A stretch of 64,000 nt of DNA, taken from sequence record PP496444.1; one strand, 5' to 3'. The position numbers and the translations under genes were made by a program. Positions 28,368-57,317 of this stretch are shown here, in pieces (the first letter of the stretch is position 1; each line of letters begins with the position of its first letter). The notes under the pieces are model-generated. The model was not told the origin of the DNA and did no database searches. It saw nothing but the letters and a program-made list of their open reading frames with translations.

Positions 28368-28430
28368 GAAATAAAAACCCCCAAGCATTCTCGGACATAG
28401 CGCCGGTGGCTTGGGGGTTTTTATTTCTTA
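28365..28430. terminator. bidirectional terminator, 22-bp perfect inverted repeat
   Basis: TAAGAAATAAAAACCCCCAAGC (28365-86) / GCTTGGGGGTTTTTATTTCTTA (28409-30). Confidence 0.9.
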
Positions 28431-28874
28431 CTTGACGGCCCCGCCGACAATTGCGGCTGCAGGGCTGAACTTCGCCATCGGGTCTTCCGGCAATGGAACG
28501 TCTTTGCACTGGTCCTCCTTAAGGTCACGTCGGTAGTAACACAGGAGCACCTTGTCCGACTTGATATACCCCATGATCGATTGCAGGTTGACACCCATGG
28601 TCAAGTAGTCTTGCCATGACAGTGCCACGAATGTGGTCTTACCATCAGCCACTTGCTTCTCGAACTCGTCGATGTTCTTGTCGCTGACCACTTTCCAGTT
28701 GACCGACTTAAGGCTTAGCGCTTGCTGCCTTGGCGGGTGGAACTGCGGGATTACTTCCGCATCTGCCGCCGGTTGCACATTGGAGGTCGTTGAGCACGCT
28801 GTTAGAAGCGTTATTAATACGACGCTCAACAAGGGTAGGCTTCTTGCGTACGACGTCTTCAGTCTTTTTATCAC
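28428..28874 (-). CDS. o-spanin (Rz1-like lipoprotein)
   Basis: Lipobox LLTAC after a hydrophobic signal; start lies inside the i-spanin gene (GTG 28874 behind GGAGA). Confidence 0.75.
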   Translation of the reverse strand: MIKRLKTSYARSLPLLSVVLITLLTACSTTSNVQPAADAEVIPQFHPPRQQALSLKSVNWKVVSDKNIDEFEKQVADGKTTFVALSWQDYLTMGVNLQSIMGYIKSDKVLLCYYRRDLKEDQCKDVPLPEDPMAKFSPAAAIVGGAVK

Positions 28875-29211
28875 GGTGACTCTCCAATTTATCGGTAGCG
28901 TTTTCCTTCTCACTGCGAATGACGTTCAACTGCTCATTGACGGCATTGGCGAAGAGCTGGGTACTGGTTGCGGCGGTCTGCAGGCGGGAGATCTGAAAGG
29001 CAGCTTGACCCAGTTGCAGATCACGCTGAGCGATAGTCCCCGCCTGTTTCTGGTTTTCATCCTGAAGGTGATACACCATGAGGATGCTGGCGCCGAGAAG
29101 GGTTGCCAGTACAATCACGACCCCGATCATCACCTTTCCCAGCAGTGACCCGAACAGGCTCTTGCCCCCGTTCATAACCGCCGTCTCAACGGTATCTATC
29201 ACGTTACTCAT
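28708..29211 (-). CDS. i-spanin (Rz-like)
   Basis: N-terminal TM helix then coiled coil; C-terminal Cys pair; overlaps the lipoprotein gene. Confidence 0.75.
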   Translation of the reverse strand: MSNVIDTVETAVMNGGKSLFGSLLGKVMIGVVIVLATLLGASILMVYHLQDENQKQAGTIAQRDLQLGQAAFQISRLQTAATSTQLFANAVNEQLNVIRSEKENATDKLESHRDKKTEDVVRKKPTLVERRINNASNSVLNDLQCATGGRCGSNPAVPPAKAASAKP

Positions 29212-29524
29212 TGGTAGGATCTCTAGTAATGATTACTGATGGAGGTGGTCCAGTGTCGAACTTCCCGTTCGGACCGGTTTCTACGTAAAACTTGAAATAG
29301 GCCGCAGCAGAGCCGACCGTTGCACCCAAGATCGCAGCCGCTCCCAGACCATCCATCGACGACGCCTTCATCCAGTTGACGACATCGAACGACAGCTTCA
29401 TCCAGAAGAACAGCAGCATGATGGGGAAGATCCGCCATGCGACCATGACGTATTGCACGTGGTCCACAACAGACCTGAACCACGGATTGATGTGTTGCGG
29501 ATCAGGTTTCTGTGACGAAGCCAT
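29204..29524 (-). CDS. putative holin
   Basis: 106 aa, two hydrophobic helices, between the amidase-like and spanin genes. Confidence 0.6.
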   Translation of the reverse strand: MASSQKPDPQHINPWFRSVVDHVQYVMVAWRIFPIMLLFFWMKLSFDVVNWMKASSMDGLGAAAILGATVGSAAAYFKFYVETGPNGKFDTGPPPSVIITRDPTNE

Positions 29525-29996
29525 ACGGCACCCCTTGCAGTGTTTGCACTAGCGCTTGTACGTCGAAGCATGGACTCTCAGTCGGCGGTTGTCCCTCCAC
29601 CTGGGGATGTTCCTTGGCCCCACGTATCTCCGTGACGGGAATCCTGTACTTGCTGACCAGACTGTCCAGCAGATAGCGCAGTGAGTCCTTCTGCACCGGC
29701 GTGAAGTTGTCCACCCATTCGCCTTTGTTGTTCAATCCCCCGATCAAGCAGATACCCAAGTTGCCCTGAGTCTTGTTCGGGGTGTGCATGCCCACTGACC
29801 TGTCGTCCCGACCATTGACCACGTTCCCGTTCGGCAGGATCAGGTAGTGGAAGTCGATGAACAGTCCGGTGTGTGAGCACTTGCGCTTCGGGTCTGACTG
29901 GCATGCCTTCATGGTCTGGGAGTTCAGGAATTCAAGCCATGAGAACCCCGTCATCTTCTCAGTCCCGGAGCAATGGATTGTTACCTCTGAAATCAT
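29502..29996 (-). CDS. T7-lysozyme-like N-acetylmuramoyl-L-alanine amidase fold, apparently lacking catalytic residues
   Basis: TIHCS, HYLI..NG.V..GR, GMH, NLGICLIGG, FTPVQKDSL, PCFDV. Confidence 0.8.
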   Translation of the reverse strand: MISEVTIHCSGTEKMTGFSWLEFLNSQTMKACQSDPKRKCSHTGLFIDFHYLILPNGNVVNGRDDRSVGMHTPNKTQGNLGICLIGGLNNKGEWVDNFTPVQKDSLRYLLDSLVSKYRIPVTEIRGAKEHPQVEGQPPTESPCFDVQALVQTLQGVPYGFVTET

Positions 29997-30463
29997 TATA
30001 GAACCCCTTGCAGCAATTGGCGGGTGTTGCCAGTCTTCCCTATTAGGCCTAAGTCTTTGGTGAAGAAGTCAAACAGGACTTTGCCCGTGACCGCATGGTT
30101 CTTTGGCATCACTTCGATACCGTTCTCGCGAAGGCACTCGGAGATCAGTTCAAAGCAGTACCACCTGTCCTTGGAGTGAATGTGCAGGAACCACAAGGCG
30201 ATCCCGAGGAAGTCATACTTGCGGCCTCTGTTCCGCAGCAAGAAGTCCTTGGCATCCATCTGTGGGAAATCGAACACCATGATGGTGCGATCCATTTCAT
30301 GCTCTGGGAACGTATTGATATCGAGGTAGCCCCGAGCCATGTTCGAGTCCCAGACTTCGTCTCCCTGCACGATGGACGCATGCGAAACAGGATAGCCTGT
30401 GCCGATACTGACAGCCATCGATGCGATATCGTAGACATAGGCTTGATGAAGAATAACGCGCAT
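29996..30463 (-). CDS. permuted papain-like NlpC/P60 (YiiX/YaeF-like) enzyme
   Basis: SHASIV (His before Cys), GRKYDFLG, WYCFEL. Confidence 0.7.
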   Translation of the reverse strand: MRVILHQAYVYDIASMAVSIGTGYPVSHASIVQGDEVWDSNMARGYLDINTFPEHEMDRTIMVFDFPQMDAKDFLLRNRGRKYDFLGIALWFLHIHSKDRWYCFELISECLRENGIEVMPKNHAVTGKVLFDFFTKDLGLIGKTGNTRQLLQGVL

Positions 30464-39602: not shown

Positions 39603-40610
39603 TCAGGCGAGGAATCTGTGTAAGCCCGAGGAATATTTGTTCTGGTACATGGTCATCACCTTATTGGACGCGGTGGTGGCTCTATTACCAGATCGGTTAA
39701 ACGACATATGCAGCCAAGGGCGGTTCCCGTGCTCAAAGATGAACTGGTCATAGTTGATGTTGTCTTTGACCCAATTGGCACGATCCCAATACTCTTGATT
39801 GCTAATGCCGGGCCACTGTACATCGATGGCTTGCCCCGTCTCATGTTGGGACCTACCATTCTGCTGTGTACGAAAACCGGAGTTGAAGGAGAAACCTGGG
39901 TAGGCGTCCCACAATGGTTCCAGTATATGCTCGGCCAATGCCTTGAGGTTGCACACGATCTCCTGTTCCGTCAAGCCCCGTTGAGCCTTGATGGTGTGAG
40001 GGAACGCAGTCTTGATCGACACGTTAGCCAGCGTAAACCTTGCGGATAAACGCATGCCGTAGTCCAGCGGTAGAGTAATCATGGCGCAGTCAGTGATCGG
40101 CGTAACTCGGTCTGGCGGGGCTACCGTGTTCTCTTCCTGCGCGGGTGTATCGATTGGCGGTGGAGGTGAAGTCTGGGGCGCCGGTGGGTAGCTCATCTGC
40201 GGAGTACCGGGACTGGTCTCGTATTCATCCGCGAAGGCATCGTAACCGACATTCCGAATAAGCTTGGCTGCGTTCTCGGGGCTGGTCTGATCCACCGGAA
40301 TGATGGTGGCGGCAACAATCTCCACCTTACCCTTATCCGATGTACCGTCACCTACCAGCACCGTGGGCGAACCGGTCATGGGCGCGTCATTGTCTTGGAA
40401 CCCATCACCCATGCGGGCGACCGGAAGACCGTTGGTGAACACCGTGGCGCTACCCACTCTCTGCGACGTGGGACCGGGTGGACCAATCCAGGTGTCAGTG
40501 ACTCGTACTACAGGGAAGCCATTGACCATGTGGTTAGGTGATCCAGACACTGCCACCCGTTTAGCGTTTGACAAGTCTGGGCCTTGCCGGGCCACTGGTT
40601 TCAATGCCAT
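39603..40610 (-). CDS. PAAR-repeat spike-tip protein fused to a peptidase M15 domain
   Basis: PVARQG, GSPN.MVNGFPVVRVTD, GSATVFTNGLPVARMGD, GSPTVLVG; C-terminal NSGFR..SQH..G.AID and WLHMS. Confidence 0.8.
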   Translation of the reverse strand: MALKPVARQGPDLSNAKRVAVSGSPNHMVNGFPVVRVTDTWIGPPGPTSQRVGSATVFTNGLPVARMGDGFQDNDAPMTGSPTVLVGDGTSDKGKVEIVAATIIPVDQTSPENAAKLIRNVGYDAFADEYETSPGTPQMSYPPAPQTSPPPPIDTPAQEENTVAPPDRVTPITDCAMITLPLDYGMRLSARFTLANVSIKTAFPHTIKAQRGLTEQEIVCNLKALAEHILEPLWDAYPGFSFNSGFRTQQNGRSQHETGQAIDVQWPGISNQEYWDRANWVKDNINYDQFIFEHGNRPWLHMSFNRSGNRATTASNKVMTMYQNKYSSGLHRFLA

Positions 40611-54000: not shown

Positions 54001-56830
54001 GGCAGTCCAGCACGTTCATCAGCGTCTTACCGCCGCCCGCATCCACGTGGTCAACCTTCTTGTCCGGCTGGCGCTGACCCGACACAATGGGACGTATCTG
54101 GTGAGCCAGTGCGGAGAAGTCTGGGCGAATGAATGGCACCGGGGCCACTTCCGTCTCGTCGTTGACCTTGACCGGGTTCAGCGAGTACTTCGCCTGCTTG
54201 GCCGACACTTGAGCCTTCAGTTCATCCTTGGCCGACTGCTCTGCATACTTCGACATGGCGAAGATGGACGCCACACCCTGCATACGACTGGTGACCGACA
54301 GCACGTTGCTGGTGCCGATGGCCTTCGGATCACTGAGGACCTTGAACAACGAGTCCGCACCGTCTTGCATGGCTTCGACCGCGATACGGCCAATGCCTCG
54401 GAGCATGGGGATGTCGGAATCTGCGGTCAAGTGACTGATACGCAAGTCCTTGAAGATTTCCTCGAACGGGTAGTCGTCTGTCGCGATGTCACGATCAACC
54501 AGACGCTTCGCCAGTGACGTAACCGATTGCAGCACCTCGTGGATCGAAGGGTTATTTCCGTCGGGGAACAGGAACTCTTGAACGCTTTCACCCAGCACGT
54601 CGGTGACTGCCGCAGGAACCTCGAAGTCGCTTTCCTCGAAGTAGTCGGTAACCTTCTTGCCTTTGTAGTTCACCCACGCCGTCAGCGAGTTACGCAGATA
54701 GCCGAACGACAGTGCCTTGGGGTTTACTTTTTCCTCCAGCGACTTCTGGTACTCCATGACGCTGGCCGGGGAATAAGCCGAGACGTCAGCAGTAACCAAC
54801 CCACCTGATGCTGTGGTGTAGCTGAGGATGTCTGCGCCCCAGTCAGTGAAGACGTAGTAGGAACGGAGACGGCCTTGAGCGAACGACTTGATAACCAGAT
54901 TGTCCGTCTTGGCGTTGTCCGGGACCATGTACTGGTTCTGGATGCTGATCTCAGGAGTTTCCTGACCCTCAACCTCTTTGAACTTCGCTTTCACGCCGCC
55001 CATGCCCACGTCTTGGCGGGTGTACTCGTTGTCCGCGAAGGCGCCGCGATACGAATCCTCGATGGCCTTCTCGTACTGCGCAACAATCTGCGCGTCAGCA
55101 GTCGGTACGAATACCAGATCAGCGTCAGGGCCGATCATCATCTGGTCGCCGTTCAAGCGCGAACGCTGCGGCAGCTCACGGGTGTCCGAGATTGCCTTGC
55201 CCACGGCGCGATAGAACGATGCGTCCGTCTTGGCGAACGAGTACTGCGCGTCCGTCATCTGGTACGCCCACTCGGCCACGTCAACCGGGGCGGGTGGAGA
55301 GTGCTGAGTCACGAATGCCGCTACGTCTTCCGAGATGGTGAACTCGGAGAAAGCAACCACTTCGGCTTCACCACCTTGGCCGATGTCAGCCAGTCGGCAC
55401 ATGAACGAGCGGGACTTCAGACGCGCCATGGCATCCTTGTAATCCGCTTTGTCCACCACGTCGGTCTGCAGGGACGGTGGCACCGGCATCTTGTTGGTTG
55501 ACAACCAGCCATTGAGGCGGGTCATCGGTGTGTTTTCCAGAAGCCAGTTCATGAAGTCCACTGGGCGATCTGGCATGGTTGGTTCTTCAGGCGCACCCGC
55601 CGTCAGATTGCCATCCAGTCCACGGTACGCATGGTTCCAGTTCTTGAGCAGGCGCTCCAGAATCTTGCCGCCCACTTCATCCTTCACACGCTGGAAGGAT
55701 GGCTTGTCCTCTTTCGAGTAGGCGAAGATGATCTTGGCGACCATGCTGTCGTTGACATCGGACCAGGTGTTGTCGTAGTCCAGATCCTCGATGCGATACT
55801 TGCGCAGCACGTCCAGCTCTTGCTGGTTGGCAAAGCTGCAATACATCGCGGTCTCGCCAAGGGTACGGCGAACGTACGGCAGCTTGCCGCCTGTGCCGGT
55901 GCCATTGATGAAGCTGACCTCGTTGGTGCTTTGTATCCCAGAGTTGTTGCGGGGTGGCGACACTTCGATCAGCAGGTTGAGCCCGGCGACCACTTCCTTC
56001 AACCCGTCCTTCTCGAAGGCGAAGTCATTCTCGCCCAGCAGAACTTCCTTGTCGATGAACGGGCTGTTCAAAGCAGACTTGAAGTTGACCGGGATACGCA
56101 AGCGCATCTGGCGAGTCATGTCGTCCAGCGCCAATGGATCTTCCATGAACTTGCCCAGTGCAGTCTTGAGCAGTTCCAGTTGGCTGGTCATCAGTGCATC
56201 GACCTTGGTTTGCATCCGGGTACGTTCTTCCGGCGGCAGATACACCATGGCGCTTTGCAGCATTCTCAGGCGGGGCACGACATAGGACGTGTCGACCTTG
56301 CTGGCTTCGCAAATGCCCATCGCGTCGAACATCTCAGGGATCGAGAAGCCGGGAATGCGGGACTCTGTGACGAAGTTGCCCATGGCCGGGATAGCCAGCG
56401 TGAAGTCACCTCGACCGTTCGCCGTCACCTTGGTATAGGGTGCCAGTGTACGCATGCCTTCCGACATCTCGTCCCACTTCTCAGACTTGATCGTGGCACG
56501 GTTGGCGCGGAACTTGACCGGTGGGGTCTGGCCGTAGTCCATGAACTCCAGGCTTTCTTTCATGTCCTGCAACAGACGCTTGCCGTTGTCGAACAACTTC
56601 GGCAGCTCGGTCTCGAACAGGTTAGGCACCTTGGTCAGTTCGTCCATCAGCGTAGCGCCACCTACGGACAGCACAGCGTATGCCATGGTGTGCAGGTCGC
56701 CCAGCTTGTAGTCGTAGTTGATCTCGTAATCTTCCGGTTCTTCAACCGGCTCGGCCAAGGGTGCGGCCAGCGAACGTAAGCGTTCCATCTCTTCCGGGTC
56801 GCGACGACGCCTGCTTGCTCTTTTGCTCAT
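51077..56830 (-). CDS. giant (~1917 aa) protein with SNF2-family helicase/ATPase domain
   Basis: Motif I VDAGGGKT, Ia MCPKNL, II MDESQ, III TTGT, IV KVLIFC, V LNTGHNFQ, VI EQGQSRLNRP; ATG 56830 behind AAGGTG. Confidence 0.85.
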   Translation of the reverse strand: MSKRASRRRRDPEEMERLRSLAAPLAEPVEEPEDYEINYDYKLGDLHTMAYAVLSVGGATLMDELTKVPNLFETELPKLFDNGKRLLQDMKESLEFMDYGQTPPVKFRANRATIKSEKWDEMSEGMRTLAPYTKVTANGRGDFTLAIPAMGNFVTESRIPGFSIPEMFDAMGICEASKVDTSYVVPRLRMLQSAMVYLPPEERTRMQTKVDALMTSQLELLKTALGKFMEDPLALDDMTRQMRLRIPVNFKSALNSPFIDKEVLLGENDFAFEKDGLKEVVAGLNLLIEVSPPRNNSGIQSTNEVSFINGTGTGGKLPYVRRTLGETAMYCSFANQQELDVLRKYRIEDLDYDNTWSDVNDSMVAKIIFAYSKEDKPSFQRVKDEVGGKILERLLKNWNHAYRGLDGNLTAGAPEEPTMPDRPVDFMNWLLENTPMTRLNGWLSTNKMPVPPSLQTDVVDKADYKDAMARLKSRSFMCRLADIGQGGEAEVVAFSEFTISEDVAAFVTQHSPPAPVDVAEWAYQMTDAQYSFAKTDASFYRAVGKAISDTRELPQRSRLNGDQMMIGPDADLVFVPTADAQIVAQYEKAIEDSYRGAFADNEYTRQDVGMGGVKAKFKEVEGQETPEISIQNQYMVPDNAKTDNLVIKSFAQGRLRSYYVFTDWGADILSYTTASGGLVTADVSAYSPASVMEYQKSLEEKVNPKALSFGYLRNSLTAWVNYKGKKVTDYFEESDFEVPAAVTDVLGESVQEFLFPDGNNPSIHEVLQSVTSLAKRLVDRDIATDDYPFEEIFKDLRISHLTADSDIPMLRGIGRIAVEAMQDGADSLFKVLSDPKAIGTSNVLSVTSRMQGVASIFAMSKYAEQSAKDELKAQVSAKQAKYSLNPVKVNDETEVAPVPFIRPDFSALAHQIRPIVSGQRQPDKKVDHVDAGGGKTLMNVLDCLFTLGQYYERGDLKGNQQKRPLMMCPKNLIKNYIEDITYLTQGSVNVVVLSTDVINRYGHDYMYNLIYNAPVNTLVLCDFDFPKNGQYSIQYGNTDLILSNNSELMRRFEWIYLSMDESQYLANLDSARSSSVRAQATLSDNLRQTTGTYVHGQLTDAAGQFSIMSPSTFGSKKDFIERYAAETFQGKPLSWKNNAERDVRNQMNSAADYVRVSRREWAALLPAATETFHKVSLSKKQMAVYQDILNDAVEAIMADADLMKKLKASDEGEENVANIEMLLRPYLQRLEMFISAPAHDKVGDKVLQGTDRISPKAKEIIRLFDEHSRDKTNGKVLIFCAYVASAQALHASLPPELQKKVILYYAADKDKLLPKFEKDESIIGLIGVETSLNTGHNFQFVNRLISTDSVWSPGEFEQGQSRLNRPDPKNKYGARSKIFFDRIIADGTIDVTKTARMMSKLLTMVRFQASDARYDKLPNLPLVSMTLDSIMDANKFGSEDDQGSLFSYVDAYGQYTKIRRDEYADFLKTYDGPTKAKEIPTAGNLPGSALITVPYTSNMQLPFTDALGIIPVADWLADNDLTADEADMKGLQVHTEYGDGEVVSSGKNTLKVKIKEIGTVSVNKLAVFVILKPNKVPVRQRLAEMVGMPERATQYTTPESDPVVEEPEADDDAEEPEDEPAPIPDAPVKKAVVERNRDLDGEIFVYPGVLNNMIQLALDREDPDVTDKMATQLGFRETGKFIYAIVPTYRALSNVIDKLKENFEIQPRYLKDLESALAAFTQGKRKLLNFEAALDTDVRNFHLDRKRAVPKGELRPYVMFYEGECWILVDMTKQPSAVQVRRKVIVPTVKWESSDSEWFILSNSKAEAKAELDAIVRSGVSVGNYDEVMDTIKSLTLRTKKRTPAAKVNTEVTGKTIRRFQTKSGTRFIALVKTKDGYVLETQDGNTDLGKVSEAAAGRALAKAVKAETKWKLREVA

Positions 56831-56840
56831 GAGGTGCACC

Positions 56841-57317
56841 TTACTTGACTAAACCGTTGTTGTTGACCAGTAGATCCCAGTACGGAATCGGCGGAGTGAG
56901 TTTGCGGCGCTGGAAGAAAACCAGAATGGTCTTGGCCACCTTGATACGGTCGTAGGCACGCAAGCCTTCGATCAGTGTAGGGCCGTACAGCGTCTCCGCC
57001 AAGTTGCTGGCCTCTCGATCCGTGTAGCCATCCAGATTGGTTGCGATGACCGTGCAGAGTCGATCGACCGGCATGTCCAGACCGTTTTCATACAGCTGGA
57101 CGTGCATCTCGTTGATCTGCCCACGAAGACGGCGCAGCGTGTTGTACAGCTGCGTGATCTGCTGGGCGTTGAGCTGGGGCACTTCCATAGTGCCTGAATC
57201 ATCGGCGCCGGGAACGGGGGCCACCAGACTCTCAGCCGTGGTCACGTCCTGAATCAGCCTCTCGTACCGATCCAGCATGGTGACATCGACACTCTTGATG
57301 CCTTTTTCTTTGTTCAT
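56841..57317 (-). CDS. hypothetical protein (158 aa)
   Basis: Co-oriented ORF with SD AGGAG; stop abuts the next gene. Confidence 0.75.
   Translation of the reverse strand: MNKEKGIKSVDVTMLDRYERLIQDVTTAESLVAPVPGADDSGTMEVPQLNAQQITQLYNTLRRLRGQINEMHVQLYENGLDMPVDRLCTVIATNLDGYTDREASNLAETLYGPTLIEGLRAYDRIKVAKTILVFFQRRKLTPPIPYWDLLVNNNGLVK

Follow-up and report, generated by a model that had tools for sequence, protein, structure and literature searches.

A putative pseudo-amidase in the endolysin position of the holin–spanin cassette of Pseudomonas phage vB_PpuM-Peetri

The lysis cassettes of phages are normally read as combinations of holin, endolysin and spanin genes. T7 lysozyme, the type protein of one group of N-acetylmuramoyl-L-alanine amidases, is known to moonlight, and animals are well known to possess Amidase_2 proteins without catalytic activity, namely PGRPs, which usually retain both the catalytic tyrosine and the residues of the groove and which are secreted or act as membrane receptors. 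In bacteria, the dLytM factors EnvC and NlpD have lost their metal ligands and are retained as regulators that activate the amidases AmiA, AmiB and AmiC. In the two-component enzyme PlyC, recognition of the cell wall is supplied to PlyCA by PlyCB.

The DNA stretch analyzed here, hereafter called the window, comprises 64,000 nucleotides of the sequence record PP496444.1, and window positions correspond to record positions minus 62,000. The 2.1 kb surrounding gp114 match Pseudomonas phage vB_PpuM-Peetri (PP496444.1; a 200,264-bp genome; host P. putida) with 100% identity, and eight sister jumbo myoviruses are ~91% identical to Peetri over the same 2.1 kb. Lysis genes are not discussed in the published description of this phage collection. 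Downstream of the tail-fibre genes, the cassette consists of gp115, gp114, the holin-like gene gp113, the i-spanin gene gp112 and an overlapping o-spanin frame, in this order (Table 1). The TAA stop codon of gp115 and the ATG start codon of gp114 have one base in common, and gp113 starts within the end of gp114, with an overlap of 23 nt. The location of gp114 next to holin-like and spanin genes, which directly follow it, is as originally predicted.

Table 1. Coordinates of the cassette genes, of other wall-related genes of phage Peetri and of the homologues used for comparison
Feature	Sequence	Coordinates	Strand	Description
gp115 (Peetri_00115)	window	29996..30463	(-)	155 aa; candidate permuted papain-like (Peptidase_C92/YiiX-type) cysteine hydrolase
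gp114 (Peetri_00114)	window	29502..29996	(-)	164 aa; GenBank "amidase"; predicted T7-lysozyme/PGRP-fold pseudo-amidase
gp113	window	29204..29524	(-)	106-aa holin-like membrane protein, two hydrophobic segments
gp112	window	28708..29211	(-)	167-aa i-spanin (Rz-like), N-terminal TM segment
o-spanin (Rz1-like) frame	window	28428..28913	(-)	overlaps 3' part of the i-spanin gene
G-V-P-Y-G segment of gp114	window	29502-29545		C-terminal
G-V-P-Y-G segment of P0003	L004	2170-2217		C-terminal
gp068 (Peetri_00068)	record	56214-56888	(-)	"endolysin", 224 aa; ~5 kb before the window, ~35 kb from the cassette
gp068/Peetri_00069 pair	record; L003	56214-57216; 6214-7216	(-)	Peetri_00069: 113 aa
Peetri_00123	window	39603-40610	(-)	PAAR protein, baseplate gene cluster
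Peetri_00124				tail lysozyme, baseplate gene cluster
Peetri_00129				"endolysin", 1173 aa, tail-gene region
ME3_145	L010	4001-4507		gp115 homologue of Acinetobacter phage ME3
P0026	L028	4001-4465		T7-lysozyme homologue
P0063	L029	574-1047		T7-lysozyme homologue
P0019	L027	145-750		T7-lysozyme homologue

Among the components of a canonical Gram-negative lysis cassette, the genes for both spanins are present. The gp112 protein matches PHROG 739 ('Rz-like spanin', 3.8e-17) and the product of the o-spanin frame matches PHROG 812 ('Rz-like spanin', 2.2e-19). In the longest ORF of the o-spanin frame the lipobox (L-L-T-A-C) occupies residues 36-40, and the true start is probably internal to this ORF. 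The GenBank record of Peetri lacks an o-spanin and shows only a 56-aa ORF (Peetri_00111) at this place; in the sister phage Lauda a 127-aa spanin is annotated at the o-spanin site. The gp113 protein was assigned to PHROG 10198, a family of unknown function, and a scan of JGI metagenomes yielded 13 relatives (L011-L023) with 38-44% identity. The seven relatives that were inspected encode proteins of ~64 aa with two hydrophobic segments and are located directly after embedded i-spanin/o-spanin gene pairs. Since these relatives consistently adjoin spanin genes, the gp113 family can be tied to lysis, and position and topology suggest that gp113 itself is the holin. No adjoining amidase gene and no endolysin gene nearby were detected on the 13 metagenome contigs. 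The relatives precede another TM protein of ~110 aa, and several of the contigs carry terminase genes upstream.

The gp114 protein belongs to the Amidase_2 fold family according to both a sequence score above threshold and the predicted fold. It passes the Pfam profile Amidase_2 (PF01510) with 33.9 bits at a cut-off of 26, its residues 2-154 match PHROG 822 ("amidase", 5.7e-24), and the best solved relative is T7 lysozyme (1LBA/1ARO) with a phmmer E-value of 1.8e-16. An AF2 model built on 127 relatives has a mean pLDDT of 85 and a pTM of 0.81, with weak parts confined to an insertion at residues 35-48 and to the last ~14 residues. The top Foldseek match of the model is likewise 1LBA (E 5.7e-10; TM 0.70/0.78), followed by clostridial amidase endolysins and by insect and mammalian PGRPs, and the viral library agrees. 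An NCBIfam search with gp114 and gp115 gave no match. The gp114 gene is the sole Amidase_2 gene of the Peetri genome, and its product is characterized by lineage-specific insertions at residues ~35-46 and 131-138.

An exhaustive HMMER search provided 860 relatives of gp114, the best 30 and then 127 of which were aligned by means of MAFFT. The residue assignments were identical in these two independent alignments, and column frequencies were counted over 126 relatives. The family consensus comprises the motifs v-H-C-S-A-T, I-G-Y-H, G-A-H, G-H-R-D-aromatic-P and K-x-C-P-C-F-D. The first zinc-binding histidine (T7 His17) is retained in gp114 as H8 within I-H-C-S (His in 113 of 126 relatives). The catalytic tyrosine (T7 Tyr46; Tyr in 125 of 126) is replaced by F49, with D48-F49-H50 standing for G-Y-H; the second zinc-binding histidine (T7 His122; His in 115 of 126) is replaced by A127, with G126-A127-K128-E129 standing for G-H-R/N-D/E; and the zinc-binding cysteine (T7 Cys130; first Cys in 116 of 126) is replaced by S141, with S141-P142-C143-F144-D145 standing for C-P-C-F-D. 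These assignments bear out the original prediction, which had noted the retained histidine and the three replacements from the sequence alone. Its additional claim of a change from Lys to Glu did not hold, as the residue aligned with the lysine (T7 Lys128), two residues before the cysteine, is T139; this position contains Lys in 93 of 126 relatives and Thr in 11 that are otherwise intact.

Among 18 columns with at least 90% conservation, 13 remain intact in gp114. Four of the five altered columns (48, 49, 127 and 141) represent the catalytic tyrosine with its neighbour, where D48 occupies a glycine position (Gly in 120 of 126), and two zinc ligands. The fifth is a near-invariant asparagine (123 of 126, or 98% of the relatives), now T76, which we take to be a groove residue. 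The joint absence of tyrosine, second histidine and cysteine was encountered only in the Peetri group and in the relative P0003 among the 126 relatives. The sequence observation is confirmed and far from chance. As judged from the alignments, the changes in gp114 are concentrated on the active centre with the scaffold retained, and the canonical zinc-amidase centre is gone.

The functional consequences of such replacements are documented by the phage endolysin Ts2631, in which the single mutants Y58F, H131N and C139S have residual activities of 10%, 3% and 12%, respectively, and in which, as in PGRPs, threonine is the native residue at the lysine position (PMC4573324). Thus, of the features of an active zinc amidase, gp114 has the first histidine and an acceptable Lys/Thr residue and lacks the tyrosine, the second histidine and the cysteine. 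Since all three residues are replaced and each single change cripples Ts2631, the zinc-amidase function of gp114 would be lost, and by analogy with the homologue mutants the protein is presumably no longer a zinc amidase. With respect to the groove that binds muropeptides in the family, H8, H50, R63 and H71 are retained in gp114. The PDB entry 7nt0 describes the Y78F variant of Drosophila PGRP-LB crystallised with the bound substrate analogue TCT. The cysteine and histidine residues in and near the first insertion of gp114 (C32, C40 and H42) were considered as a new metal site and rejected: the catalytically intact relative P0004 already has the R-C-x-x-T-G insertion, P0003 does not share C32, and the model confidence in this region is low.

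The residues F49, A127, T139 and S141 occur in all five sequenced variants of gp114 (Peetri and four sister phages) from the group of nine phages. In comparisons with Peetri, the dN/dS ratio of gp114 according to Nei-Gojobori is 0.07-0.11, with about 25 synonymous and 7-11 non-synonymous differences to the sisters. This ratio is in the range of those of gp115 (0.06-0.07), the holin-like gene and the i-spanin gene. The low value, similar to that of the neighbouring genes, therefore indicates a working protein and not a decaying one, and together with the loss of the canonical zinc centre it agrees with the earlier proposal of a retained pseudo-enzyme. Position 76 varies between T, A and S among the sister phages, a hint that constraint on the former substrate groove has been relaxed.

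The only close relative of gp114 outside the Peetri group is P0003 (50% identity, 138 aa), which forms a clade with this group (support 100) on a long stem. It is encoded on a 3.1-kb contig (L004, ERR13715691_5963), where a gene for tail-fibre assembly and then one for a membrane DUF7338 protein, which is not related to gp115, precede P0003; the holin-like gene and the i-spanin gene follow it in the same order as in Peetri. The holin-like protein of this contig is 61% identical to gp113, and its gene shows the same 23-nt overlap with the amidase-like gene; the i-spanin is 39% identical to gp112. All nine phages of the Peetri group share the substitutions of gp114, and P0003 is more degenerate still: the first histidine is changed to Arg, the loop containing H71 and another loop are deleted, and the G-H-R-D and Cys motifs are also gone. 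The relative P0004, which is more distant (35% identity to gp114), contains both lineage-specific insertions, but its H/Y/H/K/C residues are all intact; its gene precedes that of a small TM protein. Because P0004 has the lineage insertions yet an intact site, the catalytic loss in the gp114 lineage is derived, and these sequence comparisons indicate that the predicted pseudo-amidase is the descendant of a normal cassette endolysin.

Further members of the pseudo-amidase clade were not detected: a word search gave only the sister phages and one canonical enzyme, scans of IMG/VR with the amidase and holin alignments gave none, and a word search with the holin profile returned only the two already known. 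The clade at present consists of nine phages and one 3.1-kb contig. The C-terminal motif G-V-P-Y-G is common to gp114 and P0003, and its codons represent the Shine-Dalgarno sequence (AAGGGG/AAGGAG) and the ATG start codon (within T-ATG-G) of the holin gene in both lineages. A role of this motif as a functional tail was rejected, and it is discounted as protein-level evidence because it coincides with the ribosome-binding site and the start codon of the holin gene.

Other wall hydrolases are encoded elsewhere in the Peetri genome (Table 1). The annotated endolysin Peetri_00129 can be regarded as a virion protein because of its size and context, and a tail lysozyme is encoded in the baseplate gene cluster. 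The gp068 protein matches PHROG 181 ("endolysin", 2.6e-64) and aligns end to end with solved GH19 phage endolysins (9eoi, 7.7e-46; 8p8e; 4ok7). By similarity it is a full-length, intact GH19 endolysin and the obvious candidate for the wall-degrading enzyme. The gp068 gene is paired with Peetri_00069, which has no family match; both lie on the minus strand, surrounded by genes on the plus strand, and are distant from the holin–spanin cassette. The Peetri_00123 protein contains a Pfam PAAR motif (1.3e-10), and no M15 peptidase domain was detected in it at E <= 0.001.

The gp115 protein matches the Pfam family C92 with an E-value of 0.0034 and 17.9 bits, which is below the 27-bit cut-off, and clusters with C92 members in a language-model atlas (score 0.96). 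His28 and Cys103 of gp115 are conserved in ME3_145 of an Acinetobacter phage, the only non-Peetri homologue in the phage collection (about 27-28% identity, E 1e-8). The ME3_145 gene is located among small hypothetical genes of a 235-kb phage, outside any obvious lysis cassette. The AF2 model of gp115, for which only two distinct sequences were available, is poor (pLDDT 52); it gave no Foldseek match at E <= 0.001, and the sequences of the PDB, searched with a profile, provided no meaningful match either. The assignment of gp115 as an NlpC/P60 or papain-like enzyme is only a lead. A catalytically competent endolysin was not recognized in the cassette by sequence, because gp114 is devoid of the catalytic centre and gp115 is only a candidate enzyme. 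The earlier suggestion that lysis is carried out by another enzyme is supported by the GH19 protein gp068 outside the window; its alternative, an adjacent NlpC/P60 enzyme, is not, gp115 being a sub-threshold C92 match.

A loss of ligands comparable to that in gp114 was found in three T7-lysozyme homologues, P0026, P0063 and P0019, which likewise lack the second zinc-binding histidine and the zinc-binding cysteine but, unlike gp114, keep the tyrosine. The genes for P0026 and P0063 lie behind RusA or endonuclease I genes, at the position of gene 3.5 in T7-like contigs, and that of P0026 has a T7-type RNAP gene upstream and a primase-helicase gene downstream; the contig of P0019 is placed at this position only through the following HTH_39 gene, which is also found next to P0026. 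This position, between the endonuclease I/SSB and primase-helicase genes and beside a T7-type RNAP gene, is one where retention is accounted for by a role as polymerase inhibitor. The three proteins may be naturally occurring gp3.5 proteins without amidase activity that are retained for a role in regulating the polymerase. Another homologue, P0024 (498 aa), is canonical except for a ~300-aa insertion right after the W-H motif, which starts with a Cys-containing motif reminiscent of an intein.

The explanation that we favour, and hold to be probable though well short of certain, is that gp114 is a former endolysin and now a dead zinc amidase, retained as a non-catalytic lysis accessory, and that the wall is cut by another enzyme. 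The ancestor would have been a T7-lysozyme-type N-acetylmuramoyl-L-alanine amidase that once served as the endolysin of this holin–spanin cassette; its fold would have been kept and its zinc and catalytic centre lost by the changes of Tyr to Phe, of the second His to Ala and of Cys to Ser. The translational coupling to the neighbouring genes and the strong purifying selection suggest that the protein is still made and needed, and wall cleavage at lysis would be provided from elsewhere, most likely by gp068 and possibly with the help of the coupled gp115. Position in the cassette and analogy point to an accessory role in lysis, which might be that of a PGRP-like binder of the wall or of muropeptides, or that of a partner or regulator of the holin or the lytic enzyme. 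The wall-binder version is disfavoured because position 76 varies and P0003 has deleted the H71 loop. It is conceivable, although we would not expect it, that gp114 represents a new class of protein in lysis cassettes, namely a pseudo-enzyme with the amidase fold on which normal lysis depends although it does not cleave the wall. Such a protein might control the opening or the timing of the holin, or it might direct a hydrolase encoded by a separate gene, gp068 or gp115, to the wall. The endolysin position and the purifying selection would also fit a gp114 that is the true working amidase of the cassette, acting by other chemistry or through a metal site rebuilt from H8, H130 and C143, a possibility raised by the original prediction for a nearby His and Cys. 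The loop 127-145 is confidently modelled (block pLDDT 89-96), H130 lies in a helical turn at i+3 from the lost histidine, and threonine at the lysine position is compatible with activity (PMC4573324). However, C143 is no compensatory gain but goes back to the ancestral CPCFD motif as its second Cys, since Cys is common there (62 of 126 relatives) in enzymes that use the first Cys, and H130 occupies a position that is hydrophobic (F/L/Y/V) in relatives and Asp in P0003, which has also lost H8 and the whole Cys motif. Moreover, the tyrosine of nearly all relatives is now Phe, a change that alone leaves ~10% activity in Ts2631 (PMC4573324), and a separate intact GH19 endolysin is encoded by gp068. 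These points weaken the idea of a rebuilt site, and a working amidase is improbable. We give about as little credence to a two-component enzyme in which gp114 is the non-catalytic wall-recognition subunit, in the manner of PlyCB, and gp115 the papain-like catalytic subunit, in that of PlyCA. The junction of the two genes with its common base, the low dN/dS ratio of both, the weak C92 similarity of gp115 and its conserved His/Cys pair are in line with such an arrangement, but the sister cassette on contig L004 has the unrelated membrane DUF7338 gene in place of gp115, the gp115 homologue of phage ME3 lies outside a recognisable lysis context, and the poor model of gp115 has no fold match.

It is very improbable that gp114 is a functionless, decaying relic whose frame is open only for the translation-driven expression of the overlapping holin gene. 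The last 23 nt do overlap the holin start, and in both lineages the codons of G-V-P-Y-G are those of the holin Shine-Dalgarno sequence and ATG; coupling, however, preserves an open frame and not an amino-acid sequence, and the gene-wide dN/dS ratio is as low as in functional neighbours, with 13 of the 18 family-invariant structural positions retained and a confident model. We attach hardly any weight, finally, to the view that gp114 retains only a second function like that of T7 lysozyme, as an inhibitory binder of a phage RNA polymerase or of another cytoplasmic protein. In its favour, the T7 lysozyme mutants Y46F and K128T still inhibit the polymerase, according to work cited in PMC4573324, and the other relatives without the second His and the Cys occupy the gene-3.5 position in T7-like genomes. 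The gp114 gene, in contrast, belongs to a late lysis cassette and is not among early or DNA-metabolism genes, and the Peetri genome yielded no T7-type RNAP: a tblastn search with a T7-like RNAP gave a best E-value of 0.36, and none is annotated. A Pfam RNA_pol search of Peetri was also negative, but its controls were silent as well, so that the tblastn search carries the weight. Because a T7-type RNAP was not found, the polymerase-inhibitor explanation is unavailable for gp114; this role was rejected, and the analogy with T7 lysozyme as an RNAP inhibitor that accompanied the original prediction does not fit.

If the preferred reading of gp114 as a non-catalytic lysis accessory is true, the lytic enzyme in this group of phages is a protein other than the annotated endolysin ("amidase"), which matters for the mining of these phages for enzybiotics against Pseudomonas. 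The gp114 lineage would then be a clear natural case of an endolysin that became a lysis factor without catalytic function, a kind of protein for which descriptions from phages are scarce, and along with the ligand-less gp3.5 homologues it would suggest that the T7-lysozyme fold repeatedly loses catalysis with other roles kept. Literature searches on endolysin pseudo-enzymes yielded nothing relevant, and a dead amidase under selection that takes the place of the endolysin in a holin–spanin cassette appears to be undescribed in the literature searched.

A comparison with known systems places gp114 between several described proteins. With T7 lysozyme (gp3.5, 1LBA) and Ts2631 it has in common the fold, the first zinc-binding histidine, the size, the single domain and the lack of a signal peptide, but it differs from both by the absence of the catalytic tyrosine, the second zinc-binding histidine and the zinc-binding cysteine and by its two lineage-specific insertions. 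Unlike T7 lysozyme, it belongs to the holin–spanin cassette of a myovirus of 200 kb in which a T7-type RNAP was not found. The non-catalytic PGRPs (Drosophila PGRP-SA, -SD, -LC and -LE; mammalian PGLYRP1/3/4) resemble gp114 in the Amidase_2 fold, with animal PGRPs appearing among its fold matches, and in the change of the zinc-binding Cys to Ser with the fold retained, as seen in S141 and the confident model; in the PGRPs this change has made a binder or sensor out of an enzyme. In contrast to the PGRPs, gp114 has also lost the tyrosine, the second histidine and the near-invariant asparagine, it would stay in the cytoplasm until the holin acts, and its binding to the wall is putative. EnvC and NlpD share with gp114 a peptidoglycan-hydrolase fold that was retained after the loss of metal ligands, with a regulator role that is putative in gp114, but they are bacterial proteins with a LytM/M23 fold instead of the Amidase_2 fold and have a known partner. 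If gp114 indeed represented a new class of lysis-cassette protein, it would correspond in phages to the dLytM regulators and to the non-catalytic PGRPs.
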